NCBI GenBank assembly: GCA_002269645.1
Contig: NIVC01002908.1
Coordinates: 1-51,424, forward strand
Length of the DNA stretch: 51,424 nt
Source: Macrostomum lignano
Lineage: Eukaryota
Direction: 5' to 3'
In this document: piece by piece, positions 4,705-46,109 of the stretch
Layout: every line of letters begins with the position of its first letter
Position numbering within the stretch: the stretch's first letter is position 1
Program-made: the position numbers and the translations under genes
The notes under the pieces: model-generated
What the model was told of the DNA's origin: nothing
The model's database searches: none
Seen by the model: the letters and a program-made list of their open reading frames with translations, nothing else

Positions 4705-4818
4705 ATGGGCAACTCGATTGGACCCCGGAAGAAGTTGCCGAAGGAGGATATGCAGTTTCTGATGTCAAACACCAACTTTACTAAGAAGCAGATTAAGCAG
4801 TGGTATCGTGGTTTTATT
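4705..4818 (+). CDS. ncs-2: Neuronal calcium sensor (NCS-2/hippocalcin-like), coding exon 1 of 3
   Basis: [38 protein letters not shown] matches the NCS N-terminus (Gly2, WYxGF); GTGAGT donor at 4819, phase 0. Confidence 0.93.
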
Positions 4819-4989
4819 GTGAGTGGAATTTTTCTGCCTTTTTTCCGTAAATGTCAGCGGCATGATCGTTGTAGCATAAATCCATTGAGGGGTACCTTGC
4901 ACAAGTTATGCAGCACTCATTATCGAATACATGCTCTGACTTACAGAGGCCAGCTCCCTCAGAGTGAGCTCTGATGCACCCAAATTCTG

Positions 4990-5675
4990 CAGCTGGCACC
5001 CCACCGTACTCTCAGAATCCTTCAGCTGGCGCCCCATCCCACCGCAGATCCCAGATCCCTTCAGCTGGTGTCTCGCGCCCCACAACACTCCCAGATCCCT
5101 TCACCCCATCACACTCCAATATCCCTTCAGCTGGCCTCCCTCCACCACACTCCCAGATCCCTTCACCCCATCACACTCCCAGATCCCTTCAGCTGGTGCC
5201 CCACCACACTCCCAGATTCCTTCAGCTGGCGCTCCGCGCCCCAACACACTCCCAGATTCCTTCAGCTGGCGCTCCGCGCCCCACCACACTCCCAGATCCC
5301 TTCAGCTGGCGCTCCGCGCCCCACCACACTCCCAGATCCCTTCAGCTGGCGCTCCGCGCCCCACCACACTCCCAGATCCCTTCAGCTGGCGCTCCGCGCC
5401 CCACCACACTCCCAGATCCCTTCAGCTGGCGCTCCGCGCCCCACCACACTCCCAGATTCCTTCAGCTGGCGCTCCGCGCCCCACCACACTCCCAGATCCC
5501 TTCAGCTGGCGCTCCGCGCCCCACCACACTCCCAGATCCCTTCAGCTGGCGCTCCGCGCCCCACCACACTCCCAGATCCCTTCAGCTGGCGCTCCGCGCC
5601 CCACCACACTCCCAGATCCCTTCAGCTGGCGCTCCGCGCCCCACCACACTCCCAGATCCCTTCAGCTGGCGCCCG
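4990..5675. repeat. 40-bp minisatellite in ncs-2 intron 1 (CCACCACACTCCCAGATCCCTTCAGCTGGCGCTCCGCGCC)n
   Basis: Tandem array, degenerate at the left edge and homogeneous on the right. Confidence 0.95.
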
Positions 5676-6503
5676 CTACGCCTCTCGGATCTCTCGCAAA
5701 GCTTAAGTCGGTAAAAACAAACTGACGGCATCAGCATCCGAACCAGCATTTGGCTGCAATGCCTTCCCGTCCCAGAGAAACCATCCCGTCCTGACAACCC
5801 AGTCAATCTCTTCCGCAGAAACCTTTCTCCTTTTCCCTCCCTCACTCGCTTCCAATTTTGCTTTTTTCAGTCGGCACTCGCTTCGCTGGCACTGAGCCCC
5901 TCCCCCCATCTCCATGCCGCCTTGCGTGCCCCATTAATTAAGGGTTCGAGTCCTGAGGTCTGGAGCGAGTGAAAGAGAGAAAAGGCAGGCAGTTGGGCAG
6001 GCAAGGGAGGCGATGGATCTGGTAGAGGAGCGCATAGTAGGCAGGAGAGCTCGGACTGCTGCGGCTGTGCAGGAGGAAGGGAAGGCAGGAGGTACTTGAG
6101 AGCAGAGCTCCGAGGCTCCGAAGGGGCCACTTGCGGGTTCACGCAAGCGAGAGGCGGAGAGGCGCAGAGGAGTAAAGGGCAGTAAAGTGGAATGGGTTCA
6201 CAATTTAGACCAAAAGCTGAAGCTGGGAAGTGATTGACAGAGCAAGTGTAAGTGAGTGTATTATAGATGCGGCCGGTTGGAGACTGGCTCAGCTGAAGAA
6301 TACTGCCCGGTGAAGATGGCCCTGTGTTTTGACAGGGCCGGGGCAGTATGGCTACCAGGGTGCACTTTTTGGGTGTTTAGTCAGACCAGCTGGATTGACA
6401 AACACGGCTGCTCTTTAAGGTACTTCGTTCTCGTGATGGAAAAACTGTCCTCTTGCCTGGAAGTCTTGATCCCAAACTTCCTCGGTCAATTCTCCCCCTT
6501 CTA

Positions 6504-7459
6504 CCTGGTTGATTCTCCCCTCATTCCCGGTTGATTCTCCCCTCATTCCCGGTGGATTCTCCCCTCTTTCCCGGTTGATTCTCCCCTCATTCCCGGTTGA
6601 TTCTCCTCTCATTCCCGGTGGATTCTCCCCTCATTCCCGGTTGATTCTCCCCTCATTCCCGGTTGATTCTCCCCTCATTCCCGGTTGATTCTCCCCTCTT
6701 TCCCGGTTGATTCTCCCCTCATTCCCGGTTGATTCTCCCCTCATTCCCGGTTGATTCTCCCCTCATTCCCGGTTGATTCTCCCCTCATTCCCGGTTGATT
6801 CTCCCCTCATTCCCGGTTGATTCTCCCCTCATTCCCGGTGGATTCTCCCCTCTTTCCCGGTTGATTCTCCTCTCATTCCCGGTTGATTCTCCCCTCTTTC
6901 CCGGTTGATTCTCCTCTCATTCCCGGTTGATTCTCCCCTCTTTCCCGGTTGATTCTCCTCTCATTCCCGGTTGATTCTCCCCTCATTCCCGGTTGATTCT
7001 CCCCTCATTCCCGGTTGATTCTCCCCTCATTCCCGGTTGATTCTCCCCTCTTTCCCGGTTGATTCTCCTCTCATTCCCGGTTGATTCTCCCCTCTTTCCC
7101 GGTTGATTCTCCCCTCATTCCCGGTGGATTCTCCCCTCTTTCCCGGTTGATTCTCCTCTCATTCCCGGTTGATTCTCCCCTCTTTCCCGGTTGATTCTCC
7201 TCTCATTCCCGGTTGATTCTCCCCTCATTCCCGGTTGATTCTCCCCTCTTTCCCGGTGGATTCTCCCATCTTTCCCGGTTGATTCTCCCCTCATTCCCGG
7301 TTGATTCTCCCCTCATTCCCGGTTGATTCTCCCCTCTTTCCCGGTTGATTCTCCCCTCTTTCCCGGTTGATTCTCCCCTCTTTCCCGGTTGATTCTCCCC
7401 TCTTTCCCGGTTGATTCTCCCCTCTTTCCCGGTTGATTCTCCCCTCATTCCCGGTTGAC
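6504..7459. repeat. 22-bp minisatellite in ncs-2 intron 1 (GATTCTCCCCTCATTCCCGGTT)n
   Basis: Directly visible tandem array. Confidence 0.95.
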
Positions 7460-7552
7460 TTTCCCTTTATCACGGTTAAATCTTCCCATTCTCCTTTCTT
7501 CCCCGGCAGGCAAACAGGAGAAAAAGACATTCTCAACCCCATTTACCCTCAG

Positions 7553-7825
7553 CGTGACTGTCCATCAGGCCAGCTCAGCAAGAAGAAGTTCATCGAGGTG
7601 TACTCCGGCTTCTTCCCAGATGGCAATGCCGAGGAGTTCTGCACCCACGTGTTCCGCACATTCGACAAAGACAACTCTGGCAAGATTGACTTCAAAGAAT
7701 TCCTGTTGGCGATCAACATCACTTCTGGCGGCAAGCCCCAGGAGAAGCTGGAGTGGGCCTTCCAGATGTACGACATTGACGGCAACGGCAGCATTGAGCG
7801 GTCTGAGATGGTCGAGATCATCAAG
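7553..7825 (+). CDS. ncs-2: Neuronal calcium sensor, coding exon 2 of 3
   Basis: CCCTCAG acceptor; RDCPSG (inactive EF1), EF2 [24 protein letters not shown]3 [12 protein letters not shown]; GTGAGG donor at 7826; 273 nt, phase 0/0. Confidence 0.96.
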
Positions 7826-7844
7826 GTGAGGCTTTTTAGCACAC

Positions 7845-8427
7845 AGCGCCACAAGGAGAATAGCATGGCGCCACAAAGAGAATAGCATGGCGCCACAAGG
7901 AGAATAGCATGGCGCCACAAAAAAGAATAGCATGGCGCCACAAGGAGAACAGCATGGCACCACAAAAAGAATAGCATGGCGCCACAGAGAGAATAACATG
8001 GCGCCACAAGGAGAATAGCATGGTTCCACAAGAAAAATAGCATGGCGCCACAAGGAGAATAGCATGGCGCCACAAAGAAGAATAGCATGGCGCCACAAAG
8101 AGAATAGCATGGCGCCCCAAAGAACAATAGCATGGCGCCACAAAGAGAATAGCATGGCGCCACAAAGAGAATAGCATGGCGCCACAAGGAGAATAGCATG
8201 AAACCACAAAAAGAATAGCATGACGCCACAAGAAGAATAGCATGGCGCCACAAGGCGAATAGCATGGCGCCACAAAGAAAAATGGCAGGGCGCCACAAGG
8301 AGAATAACATGGCGCCACAAAGAGAATAGCATGGCGCCACAAGGAGAATAGCATGGCGCCACAAAGAGAATAGCATGGCGCCACAAGGAGAATAGCATGG
8401 CGCCACAAGGAGTGTAGCACATGGCGC
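7845..8427. repeat. 22-bp minisatellite in ncs-2 intron 2 (CACAAGGAGAATAGCATGGCGC)n
   Basis: Tandem array starting about 20 nt after the donor. Confidence 0.95.
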
Positions 8428-9339
8428 TGAAAAGACCCTACCACAAGCGCCTATCAAGACTCCCGCAAGACAAAATAAGCAATGAAGCTGTCACTCGGAT
8501 GCTGCTTTCACTGCCGCACAGTTCGCACAGATTCCATAGAAACGCTCACCAACAGACCACAAAGCAGTCAGCGCGTGTTTCTGCATCGCGGGCCAACACA
8601 AGCCATAAAAGACTCAGAGAAACAGACTGCTGCGATAATTCGGGAGCTAACGGGGCGCAATCAGTGAGGCATGCCAGCTGCCTGGCAGGCGGGCTTGAGC
8701 AGGTGTTGGGAGTTTAATCCCCGAAAATAATCCGGCCTCTTAGGTACGCGCCGGCTGTCAGAGCTGAGCGGGACTGGCTGACAGGCTGACTGCAGGCGGG
8801 CATCTTTCGAAGCCCAGAGCCAGAAGGTACAAGCGGGGATGAGCAAGGAACGCATGCAAGCAGAATCGATTCGTCAGGCAGCCCCAGAATCCTTCAGTTT
8901 CAATCAGCTTCATCGGCTTCCTTTTCTTTCCAATCCAAAATTCGTACCGAGCTCAAGCGGTCCTGGCAACGGGTCTGAGTACTCGCAGCGTGGGGGATTA
9001 GCCGCCTCTTCGCCTTCTCTTTCTCTCTCTCTCTCTCTCGACGGTGCAGCGAAATCGGCTCAGCTCTGCACAAGTTGGGATGCAATTAAATTTGAGCACG
9101 CCAGAGTCTTTGAGCACGCTAGCTAGTAGAGGCATGCAAGAATGAGGGATTGAGAGAGCAAAAGGTGTCCCCTATTTATAACCAGCTCTTGTATGCCATG
9201 CTGGCTATTCGTGTACTCTGCGATTGTTTTATTGAGCATCGAAAGGAGATTTCTCTTTAGTAGATTCAACAATTATTATGTTTCATATGTATGAAGCACT
9301 GACATACTGAAAAGCATGAACTGCAACCATGTGCTCCAG

Positions 9340-9850
9340 CCATCCCAGTGCCATCCCATTGCCATCCCATTGCCATCCCAGTGCCATCCCATTGCCATCC
9401 CATTGCCATCCCAGTGCCATCCCATTGCCATCCCATTGCCATCCCATTGCCATCCCATTGCCATCCCATTGCCATCCCATTGCCATCCCATTGCCATCCC
9501 ATTGCCATCCCATTGCCATCCCAGTGCCATCCCATTGCCATCCCATTGCCATCCCAGTGCCATCCCAGTGCCATCCCATTGCCATCCCATTGCCATCCCA
9601 TTGCCATCCCATTGCCATCCCATTGCCATCCCATTGCCATCCCATTGCCATCCCATTGCCATCCCATTGCCATCCCATTGCCATCCCAGTGCCATCCCAT
9701 TGCCATCCCAGTGCCATCCCATTGCCATCCCATTGCCATCCCATTGCCATCCCATTGCCATCCCATTGCCATCCCATTGCCATCCCAGTGCCATCCCATT
9801 GCCATCCCATTGCCATCCCATTGCCATCCCAGTGCCATCCCATTGCCATC
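9340..9850. repeat. 11-bp minisatellite (CCCATTGCCAT)n
   Basis: Tandem array with CCCAGTG variants. Confidence 0.95.
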
Positions 9851-10935
9851 TCATCCCAGCGCTCAGTATCTCAACATCCCAGTGCTCAACATCCCAGTGC
9901 TCAGCATTCCAGTGCTCAGCATCCTAGCATCGCAGTGCTCAGCATCCCAGTGCTCAGCATCCCAGTGCTCAGCATCCCAGTGCTCAGCATCCCAGTGCTC
10001 AGCATCCCAGTGCTCAGCATCCCAGTGCTCAGCATCCCAGTGCTCAGCATTCCAGTGCTCAGCATCCCAGTGCTCAGCATCCCAGTGCTCAGCATCCCAG
10101 TGCTCAGCATCCCAGTGCTCAGCATCCCAGTGCTCAGCATTCCAGTGCTCAGCATCCCAGTGCTCAGCATCCCAGTGCTCAGCATCCTAGCATCCCAGTG
10201 CTCAGCATCCTAGCATCCCAGTGCTCAGCATCCTAGTATCCTAGTGATCAGCATCCTAGCATCCCAGTGCTCAGCATTCTAGTATCCTAGTGCTCAGTAT
10301 CCTAGCATCCCAGTGCTCAGCATCCTAGTATCCTAGTGCTCAGCATCCTAGCATCCCAGTGCTCAGCATCCTAGCATCCCAGTGCTCAGCATTCTAGTAT
10401 CCAAGTGCTCAGCATCCCAGCATCCTAGCATCCCAGTGCTCAGCATCCTAGTATCCTAGTGCTCAGCATCCTAGCATCCCAGTGCTCAGCATCCTAGTAT
10501 CCCAGTGCTCAGCATCCCAGTGCCCAGCATCCTAGCATCCCAGTGCTCAGCATCCCAGTGCTCAGCATCCCAGTGCTCAGCATCCTAGTATCCCAGTGCT
10601 CAGCATCCCAGTGCTCAGCATCCCAGTGCTCAGCATCCTAGTATCCCAGTGCTCAGCATCCCAGTGCTCAGCATTCTAGCATCCCAGTGCCCAGCATCCT
10701 AGCATCCCAGTGCTCAGCATCCCAGTGCTCAGCATTCTAGCATCCCAGTGCCCAGCATCCTAGCATCCCAGTGCTCAGCATCCCAGTGCTCAGCATTCTA
10801 GCATCCCAGTGCCCAGCATCATAGCATCCCAGTGCTCAGCATCCCAGTGCTCAGCATCCTAGCATCCCAGTGCTCAGCATCCTAGCATCCCAGTGCTCAG
10901 CATCCCAGTGCCCAGCATCCATGCATCCCAGTTGC
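9851..10935. repeat. 15-bp minisatellite (CAGCATCCCAGTGCT)n with CATCCTAG variants
   Basis: Tandem array abutting the 11-mer array. Confidence 0.95.
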
Positions 10936-11017
10936 CCAGCATCTTACTGTCCCCATTGAGCACTGGGGGACTCGAATCCTGCCTACAACCCCGAACCCGA
11001 ACCGGCCATCTCTGCAG

Positions 11018-11206
11018 GCAATCTACAGCATGCTGGGTGCAGACGAGTCCAACGTAGACATGAGCCCGGAGGCTCGTACCGAGGAGATCTTCGACAAGAT
11101 GGACGACAACGGCGACGGCGTGTTGTGCCGCGAGGAGTTCATGAAGGGCTGCATGGCGGACAAGCAGCTCTACTCCATGCTGCTGGCGGACGAGCCCGCC
11201 GAGTGA
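11018..11206 (+). CDS. ncs-2: Neuronal calcium sensor, coding exon 3 of 3 (spliced product 191 aa)
   Basis: TCTGCAG acceptor; AIYSMLGADESNVDMSPEARTEEIFDKMDDNGDGVLCREEFMKGCMADKQLYSMLLADEPAE-stop, EF4 DDNGDGVLCREE; not in the ORF track because it is shorter than the cutoff from its first ATG. Confidence 0.95.
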   Translation, partial: AIYSMLGADESNVDMSPEARTEEIFDKMDDNGDGVLCREEFMKGCMADKQLYSMLLADEPAE

Positions 11207-11585
11207 TCAGCCAGCTGCCAGCCCCTTGTCTCCACGAACTTCGAGCCCCAGCATCCCCAGCTTCAGCCGGGCTCCAGCTCTGATAAGCTGCTTTTCCCTG
11301 CGACGTATCCTAACTGAAATATTTATTTTTTACTGTTCTGGATAGCTGACTGGATATCGACTGAAGCCTGTTTGAATTGCAATTGCCGTCTCCACCCAGT
11401 CTGTGTACTTTTTGTGTCCTCTTTGTCTCCATTTCTTCCTTTTATTTTAAATCTTTCTCTGAAGGTTTTTCAAAGTTCTTATCACTCTGGATTAGTAAAT
11501 TGGATTTGTCTTCGCAGTTATAGCTATATTCGATAGTACGCAAGAAAGGATGGGAACGGTTGCGGGTCGTCCCTGTATTCCGTTT

Positions 11586-11865
11586 TGAGGGGGTTGTAGC
11601 CCAGTGGTCAGAGCGTCGGACTCACGACTTGAAGGTCATGGGTTCGATTCCCGAATCCCACTGGAGCAATTTGTGTCCTTGAGCAAGACACTTAACTCTG
11701 CATTGCTTCAGTTTACCCAGCTGTAAAATGGGTGCCAGCATTAGCTGGGGTAATTGAGGGTGTGTGGCGACCCCCCAGTCCTTGGACTGAACAGCCGTAC
11801 GCAGCCTTCAGATGCGCCGCGCAATGGCTGCGGCTGAGCTGTCGGTTGCACTTATTAATTATATC
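11586..11865 (+). mobile_element. tRNA-headed CORE-type SINE
   Basis: A box TAGCCCAGTGG (11597), B box GGTTCGATTCC (11641), then GTGTCCTTGAGCAAGACACTTAACTCTGCATTGCTTCAGTTTACCCAGCTGTAAAATGGG resembling the MIR/CORE domain; AT-rich tail; ATTCCGTTT direct repeat at 11577-11585 and 11866-11874. Confidence 0.85.
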
Positions 11866-14947: not shown

Positions 14948-16889
14948 GCCGGGACTGCTGCGGGGGAGCCGTAGCCGTTAAATTTTTGCCCACAAGAGTC
15001 AATCCTTTAAGATTAGTGTGTATGTACATGTACATCCCATAGCGATGAAGAACTTCAGGGCCGATGTGCACCCTGCATGAGCGTTTGCCTGCGTACGTAT
15101 CAAAGTTGCTTACCTCTCCGCTGTCTGCGAAGGGATTGCTTGCAGTTGTTTCGGTGACAAGAAAAGACCCTTTTAGTGACAGCCGTTGTGTGTGCAGAAA
15201 ATTATCTTGCCAATCTTAAGTGATGAAAACTAAAATTTCAGAGTCTGCTAAAACGGTAAAGCATTGTTTCATTTAATTTTGTTTATGTATACTATTTTAG
15301 GGTTGCGATATTTGTATCTGTACGTTTTCTGCAACTCGCGAATATTTCTCCGTCCTTTTCTCGGTGGGAATTTCATGATGAGTATCATTTATGTTTATGT
15401 GTCTGAATATTCTGGGATGAATTAAAATGATCTGTAGAAAAATAAAACAAAATATCAGTTTGAATTTGTTGTCCTGTGTTTTGAATTTCCTCTGTCTTGA
15501 TTTGCCATCTCTCGACTTGGGTTGTTGACATCTTAGAATTGCAACAAAAAACAAAATGTAGTTCGGCAGGCTTACTTTGTTACTCAGCACACGCTTAAAC
15601 AAGGTTCGTTTTCCCCTAGAAATTACAGCGTCGATTCGACAAAAATCCCCAAGGGGATCACCTGCCGGCATTGATGCAGCTACTCGATCTCCGCTTGATT
15701 CTCTAAGCGAATAATCGCATGTACCAGCCAGTAGCTACAGACGGGAGCGGCAGCAACGGAGCAGCAAGAAAACGAGCGGAATTTGATAATCGCAGTCCCC
15801 CAGGGACGGCTGGCTTCGCGGCCAGAGAGGCTGTGGTGTGTGAGATACTCCACTACTCCACTATGGCGAGTGCCTAATGGGCTCAAAACAGCATGACCAA
15901 CGCGGCAATGCGTGGCCGTCAGCTCGCTTTTTATTTATTAGTTAGCGGAGTACCGCGAGATCCGGGACAGGCTGAGAGTCTGGAAGTCGATGGCGTAATA
16001 GTACATTTGTCTATTCAATCCCGTTGGTATTACATGTAGCGCATGGAACGGGTGAGTCGCTAGTTTCGATGCAAAGTAAATAATCGACGAATAGCAGCTG
16101 CCTAGGGCTGATTTCCTTGACATTAGATGGTCACAGAAGCTACGAGTAAAGCTAAGGTCACCACTCACGCGTAGTCCTAGCCAAAAAATATGTTTGTATT
16201 ATTCACTGTAAAAATTAAAGCCATCAATTTAGCCAAGGGTCCGCAAACTCCGGCCTGTGGGCCACACGCGACCCGCGAAGCCTCTCTATCCGGCCCTCGG
16301 GTCCTTTGAAACTTCACAATGGCAATCCGGCCCACTTACGAGTATATCCGCCCATTTACATGTACTGCACTATAGCTTTTACTGTCAAAGTGCGACATTT
16401 CATATGTAAGACGTCTACAAAAAACACACAGCTGTTCATAAATAGCCACTGTCTGACGGGCGCGGTGCGTACGAATTCATGAACAAAATCATGTGTTGTT
16501 GTTGTCCAATTGTTTTGCATGCCCACGTATACAACTAAGCAATTGGGGACATCAGTTCTGTGTGCTGCTTCATAAAGTCTTTTGATCTAAAAAAGTACAT
16601 TTAACTAGTCAGCCTACAGCAAAACCTCTATTAAATTCTGCGCTGAAATGCATTGACAATAAAATAAATATCTGTTTAAGAAGACAGTTTCGTTCCCAAT
16701 GCTGCCATAGACATATTGCAGCATTAACGCCAGGGTTGTTTACACAGACAAAACTGACTGTGCAGACCGGTTCGATGGGCTGAGTCTCGAGCGCAGCAGT
16801 TTAAGTGAGAGCTGCAGCAGCATTTGAGCTAATTTCCGAATCTGATAGATACGAGGGTACCACGGTATCACTGGCACCACCCGCAAGCA

Positions 16890-17207
16890 ATGGGCTCGTA
16901 TTTCGCACTTCTGGCAGTCGTCCTGATGAGCGCCGCTGCCCTGCTAACCAAAGCCGACGCCATCAGTACTGGCAAGATGCTCTTCGACCTAGCCAATAAC
17001 GGCCAAAGCCAGGACCATCGCCACCACGACGACCATCATCACGACCATGACGGCCATCACCATGACGACCATCACCTGCACCACCATGACGGCCATCACC
17101 GCCATGACGACCATCATCACCATCATGACGACCATCACCACCATCATGACGACCATCACCACCATCATGACGACGATCACCACCATCATGACGACCATCA
17201 CCACTAA
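16890..17207 (+). CDS. Small secreted His/Asp-rich protein (105 aa)
   Basis: Hydrophobic signal peptide MGSYFALLAVVLMSAAALLTKADA with A-x-A cleavage site, short unique linker, then HHDDHHH repeats mixing CAC and CAT codons up to the stop. Confidence 0.62.
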   Translation: MGSYFALLAVVLMSAAALLTKADAISTGKMLFDLANNGQSQDHRHHDDHHHDHDGHHHDDHHLHHHDGHHRHDDHHHHHDDHHHHHDDHHHHHDDDHHHHDDHHH

Positions 17208-17829
17208 CATCATGGTTACTGAATTCTGAAAGCCAGAAACTGAAACGTGAAAGACATATGCATGTTGAAAAGTTATTCCGCTTCCTCAAATCCACTAGTT
17301 ATTCCTATAATCTCAACACAACAGAAAACTCTATATTGATCGCACCTTCATCTAAGCATCTTCTCGCCTTTTACTTCAATCCTAGTGTCTGCTGTTGCAT
17401 GAATACATCTGTTGTAAACTGCTAATCAGTCCTGAATGTAAAAGCTAACCACTTACTTGCTTTGATTCTGCTATCGATGCACTTGAACTAAATAATAAAT
17501 TGAAGTAAATTGAGAAAATTGAACCAGAGATCAGTAACTTAAATCAGAAAAAATGCTGTGTCAGTTCTTGTGTTTAAATAATTATTAAATTGCCATAGTC
17601 GCGAGGCCCTGAATACTGTTGATGGAGCTGGGGATAGTGGCAAGGATTAGTTAGTTGACAGAAGTAAAGACCATTGACAGAAGCCTAAAACCAGTTGGAG
17701 TCGCCGATGTCACAACAGGTGACTTGGACGCTGATACAGTGCCATGTTGGAATTCGTTTGTCGCCGATCTTGAAGTCGACGAGTTGTAGACCAGCTTGAT
17801 TTGGCTATTCGAGCGAGTTTACTGTCAAG

Positions 17830-18298
17830 CAGAACGGTCTCGATGGGCCGTCCGGTGTTGACACGCAGTTTCATGTCACAGCAGTACATCGCCATGATGG
17901 CGGAAACCAGCTGATTTGGTACCACCATTGGGAGCGTGAGCCTACATTTTTATCCACCGACGAATACATAATCTACGAATCTGTAAATCTGTATGCCTGC
18001 GAATTCCCAAGATAACAATCAGGAGCTGCTAGAGCATCCGCGCCTCTTCAATGCCTCAGCGAAAAGCCAGAATTTGCGCCACTACTCCACGACCGAAGAC
18101 AGATGCCCTGATACTCCTCAAGGTTATGGTGCGCGGCTTCTGAGGAATTAGCTGCGATGTATTCCGTGGTGCATTCGTTGGGCGCCTCCTCGCCGATGAG
18201 CACGCAGCCGGTTCACTACTCTCTGGCGACCTCACTGGCCACACAGCGGATGCGCAATACCTCGATGGGCACCTCGTCCGGACCCAGAGCTTTCCCAC
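17830..18298 (-). mobile_element. Decayed RTE-clade non-LTR retrotransposon RT fragment
   Basis: Minus strand, with frameshifts and stops: GKALGPDEVPIEVL, LIPQK, EEYQGICL, QILAFR*GIEEAR, VPNQLVSAIMAMY, TPDGPSRPF; order matches the non-LTR RT motifs KAPGPD...NYRGISL...QILALRRIIEE...LVxAIMxMY...TPDG. Confidence 0.8.
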
Positions 18299-18321
18299 CC
18301 GGCGACAATTGTAATTAAGGT

Positions 18322-18800
18322 TTGTCTCTTCTCATCTCTCTTTCTTTCAGCTCTCTCTTATCACCTCCTCTCCACTCCTCTCCTCTCCTCTCCTCTCCTC
18401 TCCTCTTCCTCTCCTCTCCTCTCCTCTCTCATCTCCTCTCCTCTCCACTCCTCTCCTCTCCTCTCCTCTTCCTCTCCTCTCCTCTCCTCTCCTCTACTCG
18501 CCTCTCATCTTCTTTCCTCTCCTCTCCTCTCCTCTCCTCTCCTCTCCTCTCCTCTCCTCTCCTCTCCTCTCCTCTCCTCTCCTCTCCTCTCCTCTCCTCT
18601 CCTCTCCTCTCCTCTCCTCTATTCTCCTCTCCTCTCCTCTCCTCTATTCTCCTCTCCTCTCCTCTCCTCTCCTCTCCTCTCCTCTCTTCTCTTCTCCTCT
18701 CCTCTCCTCTCTTCTCCTCTCCTCTCCTCTCCTCTCTTCTCCTCTCCTCCCTTCTCCTTCTCCGCTCTCTCCTTTCTCTTATTTCTCTTCTCTATTCCTT
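18322..18800. repeat. (CTCCT)n pyrimidine microsatellite
   Basis: Near-pure C/T 5-bp repeat. Confidence 0.95.
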
Positions 18801-21557
18801 CTCCTCCTCACTTCCTCTGGCCCGCAGTCATGCGCTAGGTTCTCTATTTGGCCCTTGATGTAAAAAAACTTTGCCAACCCCTGAATTGAGCCTTTCTAGG
18901 GAACGTACAAGTTCCACTAAAATGATTTTCAATGTGTTCTAGTCATTTACCTTCAATATACTTTGTCGTCTACGGGCCCCAAACAGCTTTGAAAAATGCA
19001 TAATCCGCGCCGAGTCATACTGCTCAAGATCGAGCTGCTTGCTCAGGCAGCAGGCCTCCCTACCAGACAGCACTCGGGTGTGCACTCGAGGCATTTCGTT
19101 GACTGCCTGCTGGCTGACTACGCGGAGCTGTCCGGATTCTGCTCAAGGACAACTAAAAGCAGGACGTTGCATTCGCAAATCGTAAAAATTTCGCTGGAGG
19201 CCTTCCCCGATTTTTGCTGCAAAATGCCCTGGCATGCGTTTCGTGCAAGGTTGATTATCAAGTTTCTGGAGATCAAATTTTGCGAAAGTATACCATTTCA
19301 ATAAAAGTGACATCAATTGTGCCTCGCCCATACACAAAACATTAACCTTGTGGCCAATCGTGCAGCAGAATCAGTTCAACCGTGATGCAAGCAACTTTGG
19401 CAAAAGTAACTTTAGTTTTAGTGATAAAAGACCTCGACAAATAGTACTCGAACTCGTGCTGAGCTATGGACCCCGCTGACTCACCTACAGGAAGCTTTTT
19501 TATGTTTTTTTATTTTTCTTTCCTCGTTCGTTTGATACTAGCGTTTGCCGTTCAGATGCCGTGTTGACAAAAGTGCCTCACAGGTGACACAGGCATATTT
19601 GCCGGATGGTTAATATTTTATGTATGAGTTTGCCACGATTGAAGTCACTTTTGCCAAAATCGAGATTGCAATGGTATATTATTGAAGAACTCCAACTTTC
19701 AAATATACAGTTGTGTTTTCAAAACGAATTTTGTGTAAGGATTTGCTAAACAGGGTTTTGCCGTCCTTCTGCTTTTGTTGTGAGTGATTTTGCTTTTAGA
19801 GCAGACATGCCCTTGAAATTAAAGTCGGCCCGTACTCATTGACCTTTCCCGTTTGAAGCAAAAATTATAGACGAAACAAGGAATGCCTTTTAGCAGTGTC
19901 ATTTTTCGGTTGAAGTGTAGTATATGTTTTGCAATATAGACGCGATGCAAAAATGAAATGCAACACGAGTTTCGACAAACTCAATGCTGAAATTGCTATA
20001 AGCCATGCGAGCTGGATGTACGGTGTACGGCCTAATTGCATTGCATGGAAGCATCAGACTAATTGAGCAGGTCTCAGTTTCTAATCAATTAGAACTAAGG
20101 CATCAATTAGACATGAGTAGCTATGTAAGTGTAAGAATGCCTGCTTTTAGGTCGTGACATCTAATACCCGATTTGCCATTGCCATTTTATAGCAACTCAA
20201 CACTTCTCTCCAAACTAAACTAATAAGAAATGGCAATCGGATCCGGCCTTCACCGGCAAATTCCCTGCAAATTCAATCTGGATAAAAGCTATGGCTATCG
20301 ATGTCATCAGCAAACGGCGCACTTGAGTCACGAAACAGCGCTATAAGCTTCCACCCTCTGCTTATGCATGTGGTAGAAATTCATTTTCTCTTGTGTTTGG
20401 CTTGCCCAGACATAATCGGCATGCCCTAAGCCGCATTTGAAATATGGAATACATTATTTTCCTAATCTCTCGTGAGCAGCTTGATCTAGGAATAACAGGA
20501 AAAATTGCCCCGTTCCTTATTACTATTCTACCCTAATTCCCAAGTCAATAGCACCCAAAAAGGCCTGTCTGATTTCTACACAGTTAACCTTGCTCAAAAA
20601 GCTTGAAAATCTCGTTCACTTTAGATTTTCGAATTTCCCCTAGCCGAAGATTTAATCCTCAGCAGCTGAGATTGAATGAAATTTAGGACGGTCACAAACC
20701 ATTATTGTTAATTTTGCAGGTCTTCAGCTAACTTAGTTTCCTGCATGGTTCCATCCTTTTTGTAGAATAATACATGCACGGTTCAGCAAATAAACTAGCT
20801 AATCAAAGCAAGGAGTAACATTACGAGTAGGTCCTACGGTCAGTACGGGATTAAAACTGGTTAATAATGAAAAAAGCTTCACGATGGCCAAGTGTTCAAT
20901 ATGAGGCACTTTTTCTTGATGCCCGGCCTGGCCATGCGTGTTGACGCGTGAACAACTATTAAGTATAGCCGTATAGTCATGCTGACATGTACATGTGCGT
21001 GCTGAACAGAATGCATTCATATGGTTCAAGGACATTAGGTGGCTTAATTACATGCATATATGTACAATTTTTACCGAAAGAACCATAAGCCTCTCTATAT
21101 ACGACGTAAAATTACAGAACTGCAATTCTTTGTGGGCTAAAAGTTGTTGTGTTTGGTACGCACTTATCGTTCAATAAAACTTGGCCACAGTCGCGTTTAA
21201 TATCCATCGATCAACGGAGAAAACAGCTCAACAGAGAATTTAGCCCCTGATTCTGCCATTGAGCCACACTAGCTGACGATCAGTGCTTATATTTTCAAAT
21301 AGTTGGAGGCAATTTAGTTTAGAGAGATCCAATTAAACATTCCTCATTAATTCTACTGACATTGGTGCCATGAATCCAGTTGATCATATGCTGACGACGT
21401 TTTACCTACAGCCACTACTGACAGTCGAGCGCTACACCAGCAAATCCTATATACTCGTACATACTAAAGCTCTAACCCCTTTTTTCAGTACGAATGACAG
21501 TGCCGAAAGATTGTATACACACGTACATATAGCTCGCGTCGTGTTTTCACCAGGGTA

Positions 21558-21780
21558 AACGGGTATCGGTAATTCACGGCCCGGCCCTGTCAACAAAAAA
21601 ACAAAAAATACTGACCAGAATGCCGCATATTTTTAGAGTCAATTATGAGTTTACTATGTTGTAAAATATTGATTGTCAATTTAACGAACTTCTGATGCTC
21701 TTTTTTAAATTAAGTTAAAAACTAAAGTAACAACGCCGCGGCCGTGGGCCGGGCCGGGCCGTGAATTATCGATACCCGTT
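21558..21780. mobile_element. MITE-like element with 30-bp TIRs
   Basis: AACGGGTATCGGTAATTCACGGCCCGGCCC (21558-21587) matches the reverse complement of 21751-21780 at 29/30; AT-rich core. Confidence 0.75.
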
Positions 21781-23964
21781 TTCACCATTGGCGAGACTCG
21801 TAGCAAGGACGACCTTGATGCAAACCTTATCAGTTCAAAATGAGTTGTACGATCTCTCTACTAATTTCATGCAGATTTTCTCAAATATTATTTGAACTGT
21901 TTCCCAGGCTGTCCACCATTAAGATGATTTTTGTTCGTAACTAAAACTTTGCGCGAATTCGGAATCGCCTGGTTTTTCCTAGAAATTGTGATTTCTACTA
22001 TTGTATTGTGATGTATTGTAATTTATAAATATCCAGGGGGGGCTTTTCACATTACCAATTCCAGAACCAGAATCGGTTTGGATCTTCCAAGAAAAAAAAC
22101 AATATAACTATTTAACTTTGTTGAATGTTTGACTGCCTTAACAGCCTCACTTTGCACATTTTTTTTCAATTTCTTCTTGGCTATTGATTGCCATTTAATA
22201 ATCGCAACTTTATACAATTATAGTACTTATATCCCTCTAGTTTAGTTTAGGAGACAAAAAGTTACACTTTACAAATTGGATCTGGTTCTAGAACTAAAAT
22301 AAGTAATATGAAAAGGCCTTATGATTATCACTTAAAGAAAGTATAAAATTAGATTAGATTAAAATTATTGGAGCCAAAAATTATTGTATCATTTTATTTT
22401 TCATGTTTTAAATAAATCAATTAGGGCTTATACTAATAGATGATTACTTTTTGGTATTTTCTAGGCCTAGGCCTATATGATATGTCAAAAATATCATGAC
22501 AATAATGCCAATGGATGGTTCTATGTTTTAGACCTAACATCTTGACTAATGTTATTCATGTAACTCATGCGCCATGCCTTGTTCAGTTTTGTCATTGCAC
22601 TCCATTGCTTTATGCCCAACCATTGATCTATGCATTAGTTATATGAAAAAATAGTTAAAATTTTTGACTTTGTAGTTAAAGTTGCATTAAATGAAATGAA
22701 ATCTATCATTGCCCATTGGCCATTGGCCCTATTTATTGCCATATTGGCTATAGTATTGCAGCGAGGTCTAAACTGTGCCAGTGCCCACTTTCCTACACCA
22801 GATACTTACCTTACTATGCTACATCATACATTAACACTAATGGTAATAACTAGAGTTCTAGTTAGGTTAAAGCTCAAGCATAGACCAAGATAGGCCCCTT
22901 AAGATGTAGAATAACTTACCACATGTAAAATGCACAATTTTAGAATTGAAAATGATGTAGAATAAAAATGGCACATGCTAAAGACAAGCAGTTTGCAGCA
23001 AAAGATGTAAAACACTTAGACCTATTGACTCAAAAATATTTCATTGCCATGAAAACCAATTTTGGTTGCTATGGCAATAAAAAACAATTTTGGTTGCTAT
23101 GACAATAATAATATACTCAATATAATTAGGCAATAGGCATATTTTCATTGGCATTAGGCTTAGACTTAATAAGATTAGGCCATACTATAGGTGTATCCTT
23201 ATCTTACCCTTATCTACTACTGTATCTTTTTTTTTCTTTAGGTTTACTGTATTCGTATTCCCTTTTTCAATTATTTAATTTTGTATAGGCCCCTTTCAAT
23301 TTAAATTTATCTTCTTATATTTAGTATTTATCACTGCATGCCATTTAGGACAATTTGCACTAGTAAGTAACCATGTGTAAATCTTTTTGTTTTTTTTGAA
23401 TAGTGTAGTTGTATTACAGTTTGTCAAAAAAAAATTAGGACCTTAAAGCTATGAATAGTTTAATTTTTTTAGAAAAAGCAAAAAAAACAATGGCTAAAGT
23501 CTTTTGAATATTTATCATTAGCAATTAACATGAGTTTATAGAATTTATAGAATAAAATAAAGATAAGAAGTCAAGTTATTAAAAAGGCACAAATTATACT
23601 AGTCCAGACCATTCAGTTTAATCTTTTTATTTTCCATTTTCAAGCAACAGTTTTTAATCCTTCTTTTAGTTTTTTTTTACTTTAGGTTTTTCTTGAAGTA
23701 ATATTTATTAATAATTCTTTTTGTTTCATTTTTAGGGTACACAGCTGCATTATAAAAAAGCTATAGATGGCTTGTAACTTCTAAATAAAGAAACAGTGGC
23801 TTGAGATACTTGGGATGAGCAAATTATTGAGATTTTAATAAATTATCGAAATTATTAGATTTTCTAGGTTATTCATATCAAAAAGCTTGCATGCATGGCA
23901 GCCATATCTTAATACACAGTAAGTCATATATTAGTTTAAGGTGAGGGTGCAGGGTGAGGGTAAA

Positions 23965-24349: not shown

Positions 24350-24610
24350 TAGTACTGGAACCTATTTTCTAATAGCTATGGATCTGGCAGTCTTCTGCAG
24401 GCAGTTATTTACTAATGAAGTCTTTAAACATTTGAAGTATCTTGTTTTGAATCTCATTATTTCATTTTGATCTTATTTTGAACAAAAGCTCAATATCAAC
24501 CACCTATTAAAAAGTAAAACATTTTTTCTATATTATACCCATAAATTGCACTATTGGAATACCATTGCCAGATCCATAGCCATTAAAAATGGGCTCTGGT
24601 GCCAGAACTC
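24350..24610. repeat. Imperfect inverted repeat (MITE-like remnant)
   Basis: GCTATGGATCTGGCA (24375-24389) is the exact reverse complement of 24566-24580; match extends imperfectly to about 40 bp. Confidence 0.6.
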
Positions 24611-25130
24611 TAGCCATTGCCAACACTAACCCCCGCTACTTATATGCACACCTATACCCAGTGTTGGGCACTGTTAATGAAAATCTTAACTTTTATTAAT
24701 GGCAAAAGCATTAGTGTCAAAACAAAAAATCTTAACTTATTAACTCTTAATTTTGTTAAGTTAACTGAAAGTTAACTGATAATTATTAATAAGCATTACT
24801 CCATTAAAGTTAACATAGAAAATACAGAAATCTGCACTTTCCCAAATAGACTTCATAATGCACTGTCTTTGCTTGTCCATCTTTTTAGTAAAACACAGAG
24901 GTTACCTAAGCAATTTACAAGCTAAAAAGTAATACATCATAATTTCAAAAATTTATATGTATAATACTACTAAAAGTAAGCATATGGTAAAAGAAGTAAC
25001 TTTTTTATTTGGAATTTGAAAGCTAATTAGTTAATAAATAAAATATGAAGGAAATGCAAAAGTGCAAAAGTTTGTAAGAAAAATATTACACGGCTTTTAT
25101 ACCAAATTGTTGGTTTTTGCATGAATAAGA

Positions 25131-27500: not shown

Positions 27501-27592
27501 TCATCGGCTCATGTCATACCTATAACTACCTGCTTAATTCCTGACCATTTAGCCACTGCCCACAAGCAAACAGAACTGCCTGTCTGTTGCAG

Positions 27593-28186
27593 ACCGCCAG
27601 TCAGTGGCGCCGTATAGCGGTCAGTGCTCGCAGTTGCGGGCACCTCCTATTCAACCGCTACCTGTTGCTAACCAACTGCGCAATCTGCGGCCTCAGCTCC
27701 TCGTGCGGCGATCTGATCAGCCAGAAACTGGAGTGCCGCAACAGGAAGCAATCGCTATTGTCAACAGTGAATTGGAAGCGCAATTTAACAATAGGATCGT
27801 GCGGCGTGCTGCTGGGCCCGCTCACTCACTATTGGTACCTGTTCTTAGAGAGACGCTTCCTGGGCCGGACTGCGCGCGCCCTGGTGTACAAAGTTGCCGC
27901 CGATGCGCTGCTGTTCTCGCCCGTGTACATCACTCTGTACGTTGTTAGCCTCGGCTTAATGCGCGGAGTTGGCAGGGAGGCGATTAAAGCCGATCTGTGG
28001 GAGGCCGGCCTAGAGATCTACAAGTACGAGGCCACCATATGGAGCGCTGCTCAAGCCGTTAATTTCTATTTTTTGCCAATCAGATACCGGGTTGCATTTG
28101 ACAGCGGCGTGTCGCTTGCATTCGACACTTTTTACGCCAATCAGTACAACAGTGCGCCTAGCAACTCACCTGGCGACAAAGCTTAA
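27593..28186 (+). CDS. MPV17L2: Mpv17/PMP22 family protein, MPV17L2-like (initiator ATG not present locally)
   Basis: WRR N-terminus, LLLTN...GDLISQ, GPLTHYWY, KVAAD..LFSP, IWSAAQAVNFYFLP.RYRV motifs; starts at CTGTCTGTTGCAG acceptor, phase 0. Confidence 0.9.
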   Translation, partial: TASQWRRIAVSARSCGHLLFNRYLLLTNCAICGLSSSCGDLISQKLECRNRKQSLLSTVNWKRNLTIGSCGVLLGPLTHYWYLFLERRFLGRTARALVYKVAADALLFSPVYITLYVVSLGLMRGVGREAIKADLWEAGLEIYKYEATIWSAAQAVNFYFLPIRYRVAFDSGVSLAFDTFYANQYNSAPSNSPGDKA

Positions 28187-36040: not shown

Positions 36041-39000
36041 GTGTCCTTCAGTTCCTCTCAGTGTGCTTCTGTGTCCTTCAGTTCCTCTCAGTGTGCTTCT
36101 GTGTCCTTCAGTTCCTCTCAGTGTGCTTCTGTGTCCTTCAGTTCCTCTCAGTGTGCTTCTGTGTCCTTCAGTTCCTCTCAGTGTGCTTCTGTGTCCTTCA
36201 GTTCCTCTCAGTGTGCTTCTGTGTCCTTCAGTTCCTCTCAGTGTGCTTCTGTGTCCTTCAGTTCCTCAGTGTGCTTCTGTGTCCTTCAGTTCCTTAGTGT
36301 GCTTCTGTGTCCTTCAGTTCCTCTCAGTGTGCTTCTGTGTCCTTCAGTTCCTTAGTGTGCTTCTGTGTCCTTCAGTTCCTCAGTGTGCTTCTGTGTCCTT
36401 CAGTTCCTTAGTGTGCTTCTGTGTCCTTCAGTTCCTCTCAGTGTGCTTCTGTGTCCTTCAGTTCCTCTCAGTGTGCTTCTGTGTCCTTCAGTTCCTCTCA
36501 GTGTGCTTCTGTGTCCTTCAGTTCCTTAGTGTGCTTCTGTGTCCTTCAGTTCCTCTCAGTGTGCTTCTGTGTCCTTCAGTTCCTCTCAGTGTGCTTCTGT
36601 GTCCTTCAGTTCCTCTCAGTGTGCTTCTGTGTCCTTCAGTTCCTCTCAGTGTGCTTCTGTGTCCTTCAGTTCCTCTCAGTGTGCTTCTGTGTCCTTCAGT
36701 TCCTCTCAGTGTGCTTCTGTGTCCTTCAGTTCCTCTCAGTGTGCTTCTGTGTCCTTCAGTTCCTCTCAGTGTGCTTCTGTGTCCTTCAGTTCCTCTCAGT
36801 GTGCTTCTGTGTCCTTCAGTTCCTCTCAGTGTGCTTCTGTGTCCTTCAGTTCCTCTCAGTGTGCTTCTGTGTCCTTCAGTTCCTCTCAGTGTGCTTCTGT
36901 GTCCTTCAGTTCCTCTCAGTGTGCTTCTGTGTCCTTCAGTTCCTCTCAGTGTGCTTCTGTGTCCTTCAGTTCCTTAGTGTGCTTCTGTGTCCTTCAGTTC
37001 CTCTCAGTGTGCTTCTGTGTCCTTCAGTTCCTTAGTGTGCTTCTGTGTCCTTCAGTTCCTCAGTGTGCTTCTGTGTCCTTCAGTTCCTCTCAGTGTGCTT
37101 CTGTGTCCTTCAGTTCCTCTCAGTGTGCTTCTGTGTCCTTCAGTTCCTCTCAGTGTGCTTCTGTGTCCTTCAGTTCCTCTCAGTGTGCTTCTGTGTCCTT
37201 CAGTTCCTCTCAGTGTGCTTCTGTGTCCTTCAGTTCCTCTCAGTGTGCTTCTGTGTCCTTCAGTTCCTCTCAGTGTGCTTCTGTGTCCTTCAGTTCCTCT
37301 CAGTGTGCTTCTGTGTCCTTCAGTTCCTCTCAGTGTGCTTCTGTGTCCTTCAGTTCCTCTCAGTGTGCTTCTGTGTCCTTCAGTTCCTCAGTGTGCTTCT
37401 GTGTCCTTCAGTTCCTCTCAGTGTGCTTCTGTGTCCTTCAGTTCCTCTCAGTGTGCTTCTGTGTCCTTCAGTTCCTCTCAGTGTGCTTCTGTGTCCTTCA
37501 GTTCCTCTCAGTGTGCTTCTGTGTCCTTCAGTTCCTTCAGTGTGCTTCTGTGTCCTTCAGTTCCTCTCAGTGTGCTTCTGTGTCCTTCAGTTCCTCTCAG
37601 TGTGCTTCTGTGTCCTTCAGTTCCTCAGTGTGCTTCTGTGTCCTTCAGTTCCTCTCAGTGTGCTTCTGTGTCCTTCAGTTCCTCAGTGTGCTTCTGTGTC
37701 CTTCAGTTCCTTAGTGTGCTTCTGTGTCCTTCAGTTCCTCTCAGTGTGCTTCTGTGTCCTTCAGTTCCTCTCAGTGTGCTTCTGTGTCCTTCAGTTCCTC
37801 TCAGTGTGCTTCTGTGTCCTTCAGTTCCTCTCAGTGTGCTTCTGTGTCCTTCAGTTCCTCTCAGTGTGCTTCTGTGTCCTTCAGTTCCTCTCAGTGTGCT
37901 TCTGTGTCCTTCAGTTCCTCTCAGTGTGCTTCTGTGTCCTTCAGTTCCTCAGTGTGCTTCTGTGTCCTTCAGTTCCTTAGTGTGCTTCTGTGTCCTTCAG
38001 TTCCTCTCAGTGTGCTTCTGTGTCCTTCAGTTCCTTCAGTGTGCTTCTGTGTCCTTCAGTTCCTCAGTGTGCTTCTGTGTCCTTCAGTTCCTTAGTGTGC
38101 TTCTGTGTCCTTCAGTTCCTCTCAGTGTGCTTCTGTGTCCTTCAGTTCCTCTCAGTGTGCTTCTGTGTCCTTCAGTTCCTCTCAGTGTGCTTCTGTGTCC
38201 TTCAGTTCCTCTCAGTGTGCTTCTGTGTCCTTCAGTTCCTCTCAGTGTGCTTCTGTGTCCTTCAGTTCCTCTCAGTGTGCTTCTGTGTCCTTCAGTTCCT
38301 CAGTGTGCTTCTGTGTCCTTCAGTTCCTCTCAGTGTGCTTCTGTGTCCTTCAGTTCCTCAGTGTGCTTCTGTGTCCTTCAGTTCCTCTCAGTGTGCTTCT
38401 GTGTCCTTCAGTTCCTCTCAGTGTGCTTCTGTGTCCTTCAGTTCCTCTCAGTGTGCTTCTGTGTCCTTCAGTTCCTCTCAGTGTGCTTCTGTGTCCTTCA
38501 GTTCCTCTCAGTGTGCTTCTGTGTCCTTCAGTTCCTCTCAGTGTGCTTCTGTGTCCTTCAGTTCCTCTCAGTGTGCTTCTGTGTCCTTCAGTTCCTCTCA
38601 GTGTGCTTCTGTGTCCTTCAGTTCCTCAGTGTGCTTCTGTGTCCTTCAGTTCCTCTCAGTGTGCTTCTGTGTCCTTCAGTTCCTCTCAGTGTGCTTCTGT
38701 GTCCTTCAGTTCCTCTCAGTGTGCTTCTGTGTCCTTCAGTTCCTCAGTGTGCTTCTGTGTCCTTCAGTTCCTTAGTGTGCTTCTGTGTCCTTCAGTTCCT
38801 CTCAGTGTGCTTCTGTGTCCTTCAGTTCCTCTCAGTGTGCTTCTGTGTCCTTCAGTTCCTCTCAGTGTGCTTCTGTGTCCTTCAGTTCCTCTCAGTGTGC
38901 TTCTGTGTCCTTCAGTTCCTCTCAGTGTGCTTCTGTGTCCTTCAGTTCCTCTCAGTGTGCTTCTGTGTCCTTCAGTTCCTCTCAGTGTGCTTCTGTGTCC

Positions 39001-45000: not shown

Positions 45001-46109
45001 TCCTTCAGTTCCTCTCAGTGTGCTTCTGTGTCCTTCAGTTCCTCTCAGTGTGCTTCTGTGTCCTTCAGTTCCTCTCAGTGTGCTTCTGTGTCCTTCAGTT
45101 CCTCTCAGTGTGCTTCTGTGTCCTTCAGTTCCTTCAGTGTGCTTCTGTGTCCTTCAGTTCCTCTCAGTGTGCTTCTGTGTCCTTCAGTTCCTCTCAGTGT
45201 GCTTCTGTGTCCTTCAGTTCCTCAGTGTGCTTCTGTGTCCTTCAGTTCCTTAGTGTGCTTCTGTGTCCTTCAGTTCCTCTCAGTGTGCTTCTGTGTCCTT
45301 CAGTTCCTCAGTGTGCTTCTGTGTCCTTCAGTTCCTTAGTGTGCTTCTGTGTCCTTCAGTTCCTCTCAGTGTGCTTCTGTGTCCTTCAGTTCCTCTCAGT
45401 GTGCTTCTGTGTCCTTCAGTTCCTCTCAGTGTGCTTCTGTGTCCTTCAGTTCCTCTCAGTGTGCTTCTGTGTCCTTCAGTTCCTCTCAGTGTGCTTCTGT
45501 GTCCTTCAGTTCCTCTCAGTGTGCTTCTGTGTCCTTCAGTTCCTCTCAGTGTGCTTCTGTGTCCTTCAGTTCCTTAGTGTGCTTCTGTGACCTTCAGTTT
45601 CTCTCAGTGTGCTTCTGTGTCCTTCAGTTCCTCTCAGTGTGCTTCTGTGTCCTTCAGTTCCTCAGTGTGCTTCTGTGTCCTTCAGTTCCTTAGTGTGCTT
45701 CTGTGTCCTTCAGTTCCTCTCAGTGTGCTTCTGTGTCCTTCAGTTCCTCTCAGTGTGCTTCTGTGTCCTTCAGTTCCTCTCAGTGTGCTTCTGTGTCCTT
45801 CAGTTCCTCTCAGTGTGCTTCTGTGTCCTTCAGTTCCTCTCAGTGTGCTTCTGTGTCCTTCAGTTCCTCTCAGTGTGCTTCTGTGTCCTTCAGTTCCTCT
45901 CAGTGTGCTTCTGTGTCCTTCAGTTCCTCTCAGTGTGCTTCTGTGTCCTTCAGTTCCTTAGTGTGCTTCTGTGTCCTTCAGTTCCTCTCAGTGTGCTTCT
46001 GTGTCCTTCAGTTCCTCTCAGTGTGCTTCTGTGTCCTTCAGTTCCTTAGTGTGCTTCTGTGTCCTTCAGTTCCTCTCAGTGTGCTTCTGTGTCCTTCAGT
46101 TCCTCAGTG
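36041..46109. repeat. 10-kb satellite of a 30-bp unit (GTGTGCTTCTGTGTCCTTCAGTTCCTCTCA)n, about 335 copies
   Basis: Continuous tandem array; all long ORFs here are artefacts of a stop-free unit. Confidence 0.98.

Follow-up and report, generated by a model that had tools for sequence, protein, structure and literature searches.

Transposons of the hAT superfamily end in short terminal inverted repeats (TIRs) of 5-27 bp, and those of the Buster type leave an 8-bp target-site duplication (TSD) with the signature nnnTAnnn (PMC3517528); one miniature inverted-repeat transposable element (MITE) of this kind is Mar of Drosophila willistoni. Animal Pack-TIRs, DNA transposons that carry other sequence between their ends, are defined by an identifiable parental copy of that cargo, and 57% of the parents lie within 15 kb (PMC8277862). 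Here we consider a locus in the free-living flatworm Macrostomum lignano, whose genome is more than half repeats, with 15% simple or tandem repeats and large recent duplications (PMC5730564). The stretch analysed, hereafter the window, comprises all 51,424 nucleotides of contig NIVC01002908.1 (assembly GCA_002269645.1). A first-pass annotation of the window had proposed that positions 16226-18891 hold a hAT transposon enclosing an intact-looking gene for a secreted His-rich protein, either captured from the host or newly born inside the element. We favour a more modest reading, to which we assign a probability of about 0.62: positions 16234-18883 (2650 bp) are one old, non-autonomous hAT insertion in which a block of ~2.0 kb is secondary and the His-rich open reading frame (ORF) is most likely fortuitous. 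Judged from its sequence, the element appears to be a decayed member of an asymmetric-ended, Buster-like MITE type.

Two unlike ends of one hAT-type family

The left terminus of the element (16234-16249) reads CAAGGGTCCGCAAACT and the right terminus (18868-18883) reads CAGGGGTTGGCAAAGT in reverse complement, giving a TIR with 12/16 matching positions. Immediately outside lie the 8-mers AATTTAGC (16226-16233, the putative TSD) and AATTGAGC (18884-18891), which agree at 7/8 positions, and GGCCC/GGGCC motifs occur in the subterminal regions of both ends. These features, together with the 2650-bp length, had been described correctly by the first-pass annotation; the weight it placed on the TIR and TSD figures was not borne out. 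Pairs with a TIR of at least 12/16 and a TSD of at least 7/8, 100-5000 bp apart, number 8 in the window outside tandem arrays (this one included), and 0-4 in mononucleotide shuffles of the window. Taken alone, the TIR and TSD figures are at chance level, so the case must rest on other evidence. An inverted-repeat finder did not report the TIR, which holds no 7-nt exact seed. The chance-level count also yielded a MITE-like candidate pair of 196 bp at 24380-24575, with a 12/16 TIR (GGATCTGGCAGTCTTC) and the flanks ATAGCTAT and ATAGCCAT.

The other evidence comes from elements outside the flatworm. A degenerate pattern describing such termini, scanned against metagenome contigs, matched at least 120 loci (L008-L127). 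Most of them come from a few related Joint Genome Institute (JGI) projects, possibly host-associated worm metagenomes, and the literature had nothing relevant on the project identifiers. The loci reduce to 64 non-redundant MITEs, mostly of 350-540 bp (range 211-798 bp); neither a long element with both termini nor a transposase was found in these loci. Flanks could be scored for 63 of the MITEs, of which 37 have perfect 8-bp TSDs and 12 match at 7/8; among the 37 perfect TSDs, T stands at position 4 in 100% and A at position 5 in 97%. The reference MITEs have two unlike ends, A (CAGGGGTCGGCAAAGTCCGGCCCGCGGGCCAAATCCGGCCCGCGAG...ATCCGGCCCGCGG) and B (CAGGGGTCGGCAAACTTTTTGGGGTCGAGGGCC-24 nt-GCGGGCCGGACAGG), with the family patterns CAGGGGTC.GCAAA.TCCGGCC.G.GGGCC for A and CAGGGGT.GGCAAA.TTTTT...GGGCC-24 nt-GCGGGCC for B. 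Without gaps, the left end of the window element is identical to the A consensus at 48/63 positions (35/47 beyond the TIR), and its right end matches the B consensus, including the GGGCC-24 nt-GCGGGCC spacing. Each end scores ~7 standard deviations above shuffles for its own consensus, a score reached by 0/2000 shuffles (for the left end, the subterminal score), and the cross-comparisons (left against B, right against A) are at chance; the left end fits A only and the right end fits B only.

A profile search places both ends to the nucleotide. We built an nhmmer profile from 34 of the MITEs, mostly with perfect 8-bp TSDs, and searched the entire window with it, on either strand and with the filters disabled. 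Two matches alone were significant: model positions 1-99 at 16234-16333 (E 2.7e-9) and 443-509 at 18816-18883 (E 0.007). They share a strand and follow each other in the expected order, and the first and last positions of the model fall on 16234 and 18883. Neither the left-end profile match nor the two subterminal matches were built into the search pattern. Because an independent profile, made from the elements of other animals, matches exactly there, the termini can be taken as genuine: two distinct ends of one hAT-type family, correctly oriented. The A-type end of a non-autonomous hAT element spans 16234-16333 on the plus strand (the TIR at 16234-16249 plus subterminal GGCCC repeats), as indicated by the profile, the consensus match and homology to a second flatworm copy; the B-type end of the same element spans 18816-18883, also on the plus strand (TIR 18868-18883), as indicated by the profile, the spacing and homology to a third copy. 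Whether the two ends belong to one family, a check proposed at first pass, is answered positively by the profile and consensus matches and by these other fragments in M. lignano.

Once the termini are placed by independent evidence, only one comparison of flanks remains to be judged, the 7/8 match, with a chance probability of 4e-4 under uniform base frequencies and of ~0.02 under the target preference of the reference family. The independently placed termini and the 7/8 flanks together argue for one insertion of one non-autonomous hAT element. Both flanks carry T at TSD position 4; at position 5, where A is usual, the left flank has T and the right flank has G, and a G at this position also occurs in 1/37 of the perfect reference TSDs. 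Three of the four TIR mismatches fall where the window ends depart from the 16-mer common to both reference ends, and the fourth, at position 15, falls where A and B already disagree in the reference MITEs. Reading the mismatched TIRs as a sign of age, as had been suggested, is unsafe because the two family ends differ from each other even in young copies, and we rejected TIR mismatches as an insertion clock for a family whose two ends are natively different. Further copies of either terminus were found neither in the window nor in viral contigs, and the exact left-end 22-mer had no match in the metagenomes.

The reference MITEs make up a young, abundant family in metagenome animal DNA, with ends ~75% identical to the flatworm ends over 60-100 bp. 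This degree of conservation points to horizontal transfer or else to a strong constraint that transposase binding imposes.

A backbone with a CT microsatellite and an extra block

Copies were sought in a sample of ~280 kb of M. lignano DNA that includes the window. There the family profile detected two further fragments, both partial; family fragments occur at ~1 per 70-100 kb of the sample. Copy 2 is an A end on the minus strand (L128 19561, L129 24161, L131 20880) with the flank ATCTAAAC, 75-84% identical to the A end of the window; 10 nt later it runs into a leader, TCATGTCTCT..TTCAGCTCTCTCTT, and a long CT-rich tract. In the window, the leader TCATCTCTCT..TTCAGCTCTCTCTT opens a CT tract at ~18332, and leader and (CTCCT)n microsatellite together occupy 18332-18815 on the plus strand, with the array placed at 18365-18773 by Tandem Repeats Finder (TRF), where a CT tract had rightly been noticed at first pass. 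Within the sample, the leader 14-mer TTCAGCTCTCTCTT is found only in the window and at the copy 2 A end, and ordinary (CTCCT)n arrays elsewhere are without it. Copy 3 (L131 21935-21578) passes from a CT-rich tract straight into TCTGGCCTGCGG...AAAAAGTTTGC..CCCCTG, a B end. The shared leader, taken with copies 2 and 3, points to a family backbone in M. lignano that consists of A end, CT microsatellite and B end, with the microsatellite native to it. A later, unrelated origin of the (CTCCT)n tract was considered and rejected, the leader being family-specific.

The same loci hold an arrangement of separate interest. Within L131 20840-21935 (and likewise L128 19460-20400), a B end and an A end, both solo, are separated by ~700 bp and stand in the 'wrong' order, with B before A; a separate CT-rich tract is attached to each. 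The arrangement hints at breakage or recombination of family copies at their internal microsatellite.

The window element has, between its A end and the leader of its CT tract, an extra block of ~2.0 kb (16334-18331) that lies outside the family backbone and contains both the His-rich ORF and a reverse-transcriptase-like relic. The block is absent at the same junction from copy 2, the only other copy to span the A end and the leader; the question raised at first pass, whether other copies carry the ORF, is thereby answered in the negative for the one copy that could tell. On this comparison, the block would be secondary or foreign to the family backbone. Six-frame Pfam scans found no domain in the block and no transposase in the element, the latter as noted at first pass, and no second copy of the block was found at the DNA or protein level in the window or the wider sample.

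The relic lies at 17688-18314 on the minus strand, is broken by several stops and frameshifts, and is recognisable at motif level only. Read by eye from the translation, it contains GPDEVP, YQGICL 56 residues on, QAYRF a further 40 residues on, and then a VP..LV.AI..MY stretch, in the order and with the spacing expected of reverse transcriptases of retrotransposons without long terminal repeats (non-LTR). Neither the six frames nor a stitched frame matched Pfam RVT_1 at E<=1, no reverse transcriptase matched at E<=10 among PDB sequences (a set that presumably includes LINE-1 ORF2p and R2), and tblastn of the relic against all fetched loci gave no match. The description 'reverse-transcriptase-like' should accordingly be taken as a lead and not as a result. 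Of the 'decayed RTE fragment' reported at first pass, a broken frame with motifs in reverse-transcriptase order survives, and the assignment to the RTE clade does not, there being no Pfam or PDB match behind it.

Should the relic indeed derive from a reverse transcriptase, its N-terminus would lie directly at the right edge of the block. The distance from the reverse-transcriptase N-terminus to the 3' end of a long interspersed nuclear element (LINE) is roughly 2 kb. The position of the relic and the length of the block together make a single 5'-truncated non-LTR retrotransposon, in minus orientation, the simplest reading, and tentatively the most likely origin of the block; the His-rich ORF would then most simply run antisense to the decayed 3' half of that retrotransposon. 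Alternatively, the block may be filler DNA copied during gap repair.

It is also conceivable, though in our judgement unlikely, that the long form came first, the 2.65-kb structure with its block being the original non-autonomous element and the short copies its internally deleted products. Internal deletion is a common route to short hAT derivatives, and truncation or deletion is evident in copies 2 and 3. An ancestral interior sits poorly, however, with a block that has no transposase remnant and that carries its reverse-transcriptase-like relic in the opposite orientation, as well as with the related MITEs of other animals, which are mostly 350-540 bp long and have nothing comparable inside.

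Under the reading that we prefer, of one old insertion with a secondary block, the history of the locus may be sketched as follows, the first three steps by analogy with the family. Binding of the subterminal GGCCC repeats by a hAT transposase acting in trans would have been followed by cutting at the CAG termini, and the element would have been pasted into AATT(T/G)AGC with duplication of those 8 bp. The ~2.0-kb block would have arrived between the A end and the CT-tract leader, either as a truncated LINE in minus orientation or as gap-repair filler. Within the block, a 21-bp minisatellite may then have expanded in frame and, together with 41 upstream codons, produced the 105-codon His/Asp-rich ORF on the plus strand.

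A His-rich open frame made largely of a minisatellite

The ORF comprises 105 codons at 16890-17207 on the plus strand. Its product begins in the manner of a signal peptide and continues as a His/Asp-rich repeat; it reads MGSYFALLAVVLMSAAALLTKADA, then ISTGKMLFDLANNGQSQ, then 62 D/H-rich residues. TRF reports a minisatellite at 17013-17204 with a period of 21 bp (also 39 bp) and the unit GACCATCACCACCATCATGAC; it makes up 192/318 nt (60%) of the ORF, and its last three units are near-identical. ORFs cross this minisatellite in 4/6 frames. Long open frames are also common in the surrounding DNA: the first 21.7 kb of the window contain ~17 stop-to-stop ORFs of at least 100 codons outside arrays, 2 of them recognised by eye as real exons, which leaves ~15 apparently spurious ones per 21.7 kb. 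For the ORF protein, a search of 5.8 billion clustered proteins gave no relative at E<=0.01, and HMMER gave none at E<=0.001 among all 1.84 billion representatives. The exact protein is absent from a collection that contains the deposited proteins of NIVC01002908.1, and the literature on His-rich proteins of M. lignano yielded nothing relevant. From these sequence properties, the ORF is most likely fortuitous, made by the tandem repeat, and neither a functional nor a captured or mobilised gene; that it is a functional gene we consider unlikely. The 'intact-looking signal-peptide gene' of the first-pass annotation thus comes down to an open frame, 60% of it a minisatellite open in 4/6 frames, without relatives.

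The possibility that the element is a Pack-TIR, having taken up host sequence that included a His-rich gene or exon by gap-filling or template switching, and either carried it here or acquired it in place, deserves consideration; we find it improbable. The ends of a hAT element do flank sequence that does not look transposon-derived on both sides, hAT elements are the commonest animal carriers (208/370 cases; PMC8277862), the block is without a TSD or TIR of its own as filler would be, and the ORF is open with a signal-peptide-like start. TIR sequence on both sides is indeed present, but an unlinked parental copy and multicopy cargo were not found in the sample. Specifically, the search for a parental gene outside the TIRs that had been recommended at first pass turned up none, neither within the 16 kb upstream and 32 kb downstream that the window covers nor elsewhere in the ~280 kb, at the DNA or protein level. 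The searches of 5.8 billion and 1.84 billion proteins returned no protein relative, the other family copies (a small sample) were found without the block, and part of the block looks derived from a retrotransposon and not from a host gene. The proposal of a captured or newborn gene in a transposon is not supported, there being no protein relatives, no entry among deposited proteins, no parental copy in the sample and no block in copy 2, and 60% of the ORF being minisatellite.

Several observations weigh against an old insertion with a secondary block and a fortuitous ORF. On the side of the ORF, the signal peptide looks canonical, with a hydrophobic core (FALLAVVLMSAAALL) and ADA before residue 25; the start codon has G at -3 and +4; and an AATAAA lies ~290 nt downstream. 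Furthermore, little weight attaches to its absence from the annotation, since any transcript that overlapped a repeat was removed before GenBank submission (PMC5730564). On the side of the element, the window TSD has no TA at its centre, a dinucleotide that hardly varies in the reference MITE family, and the right-end profile match is partly built in, the search pattern having been modelled on that end. Neither an empty site nor a second full-length copy was present among the sampled loci, and mobility of the window copy was not directly seen. As for the block, no TIR or direct repeat was seen around it; the reverse-transcriptase identity of the relic is without statistical support in Pfam or PDB; and copies 2 and 3 are truncated themselves, so that the block could be ancestral and deleted in them.

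These features of the ORF are also what a genic interpretation would build on. That the ORF is a real, lineage-specific gene born in or carried by the hAT element, encoding a secreted, His/Asp-rich and presumably metal-binding protein that grew by in-frame expansion of the minisatellite, strikes us as quite improbable. The more specific proposal of a gene that arose de novo, through in-frame minisatellite expansion beside a signal peptide present by chance, and that today yields a secreted, metal-binding peptide rich in His and Asp, has little probability in our estimate. It would agree with the orphan status of the ORF, with its Kozak-like context, signal-peptide-like N-terminus and downstream AATAAA, and with the fact that every repeat-unit variant keeps the frame, and a real transcript may have been lost to the annotation filter (PMC5730564). 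However, the in-frame variants are uninformative because the repeat is open in 4 frames, and this DNA abounds in ORFs just as long.

Least credible is the suggestion that an A-end fragment and a separate CT-tract/B-end fragment merely came to lie 2.6 kb apart with 7/8 flanks by chance: solo ends do exist in this genome (A only in copy 2, B only in copy 3, and 700 bp apart in L131), and the TIR and TSD figures alone are at chance level, but the two ends stand in proper order and orientation with no further family fragment in the 51-kb window, the flank match has a chance probability between 4e-4 and 0.02, and family fragments number only ~1 per 70-100 kb of the sample.

Genomic setting and comparison with known systems

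The window is rich in tandem repeats, with more than 20 minisatellite arrays detected by TRF. The largest, of 10 kb (36041-46105), has a 30-bp unit (GTGTCCTTCAGTTCCTCTCAGTGTGCTTCT) in 338 copies that are 98% alike and makes ORFs of up to 1759 codons. The hAT element sits in intergenic DNA, between a neuronal-calcium-sensor (NCS) gene upstream and a Siva-like gene that starts at 25125. The former, NCS-2-like gene (4705-11224 overall, plus strand) has three exons at ~4705-4820, 7547-7827 and 11014-11203, with introns packed with minisatellites; it is missing among the proteins returned for NIVC01002908.1 and nearly exactly matches a UniRef fragment from M. lignano, A0A1I8IG45. Just downstream of it, at 11588-11663, lies a tRNA-Val (CAC) found by both ARAGORN and Rfam (33 bits). 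Beyond the start of the Siva-like gene, an Mpv17-like ORF at 27587-28186 is 99% identical to an M. lignano protein.

Two sister contigs, NIVC01001503.1 and NIVC01003354.1, are 99% and 94.5% identical to the window over Siva-Mpv17-MFS, and lose colinearity with it upstream of 21036 and 21567, respectively, and with each other; the breakpoints fall at other transposon insertions. At the closest NCS paralogue loci, exons alone are conserved. The 99%-identical sister (L004 1-6882) is colinear to 21036; its DNA upstream of that point is unrelated for at least 6.9 kb and includes a 766-aa DUF1258 gene. A large insertion would explain this loss of colinearity, as would a rearrangement or a difference in assembly. 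The window also carries a second MITE of ~235 bp at 21555-21790, with a TIR of ~31-33 bp (..AAACGGGTATCG(G/A)TAATTCACGGCCCGGCCC). In NIVC01001503.1, a 3.2-kb insertion lies within this MITE at 21644 and includes an annotated 57-aa ORF (BOX15_Mlig014228g3); in the homeologue NIVC01003354.1, colinearity stops at 21567, inside the left TIR of the same MITE.

As it stands, the result adds one more decayed non-autonomous hAT copy to a genome that is more than half repeats, and matters little. It does offer two cautions for scanning such DNA: TIR and TSD counts of this quality arise by chance several times per 50 kb, and open frames across minisatellites are no evidence of genes in this genome. For transposon specialists, the locus may hold more, namely asymmetric MITE ends ~75% conserved between a flatworm and unrelated metagenome animals, and a flatworm family with a native internal CT microsatellite at which copies seem to break. 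Should the ORF prove to be expressed, a flatworm would provide a documented case of a gene born within a DNA transposon.

Comparison with known systems places the locus among MITEs more readily than among gene-carrying elements. As in Pack-hAT-N8_XT of Xenopus tropicalis (PMC8277862), hAT ends here enclose non-transposon sequence, the window copy being single in the sampled DNA. Published Pack-TIRs are young, with at least 90% identity to a parent (PMC8277862), whereas no parental copy was found for the window element and its interior is not recognisably genic. A 5'-truncated non-LTR retrotransposon nested in a DNA transposon would resemble the window in the reverse-transcriptase-like relic at the edge of the block and in the ~2 kb length; the window block differs in that it lacks a 3' tail, a flanking duplication and any reverse-transcriptase match at the level of profiles. 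The JGI metagenome hAT MITEs (L008-L127) share with the window the same asymmetric ends, with 76% ungapped identity over the first 63 bp of the A end and identical B-end spacing, and differ in being mostly 350-540 bp long and young (37/63 TSDs perfect), in their host and in their unrelated interiors. From Mar, the Buster-type hAT MITE of D. willistoni, the window copy departs in its length of 2.65 kb, reached through the CT microsatellite and the 2-kb foreign block, and in a TSD that has T4 but not A5 of nnnTAnnn. The 12/16 TIR of the window fits the short hAT range and the CAG or CAA with which such repeats start, and like Mar the window copy shows 8-bp flank duplications, an imperfect CAG(G/A)GG TIR and subterminal repeats, and is without transposase coding capacity, a state in which Mar is mobilised in trans (PMC3517528).

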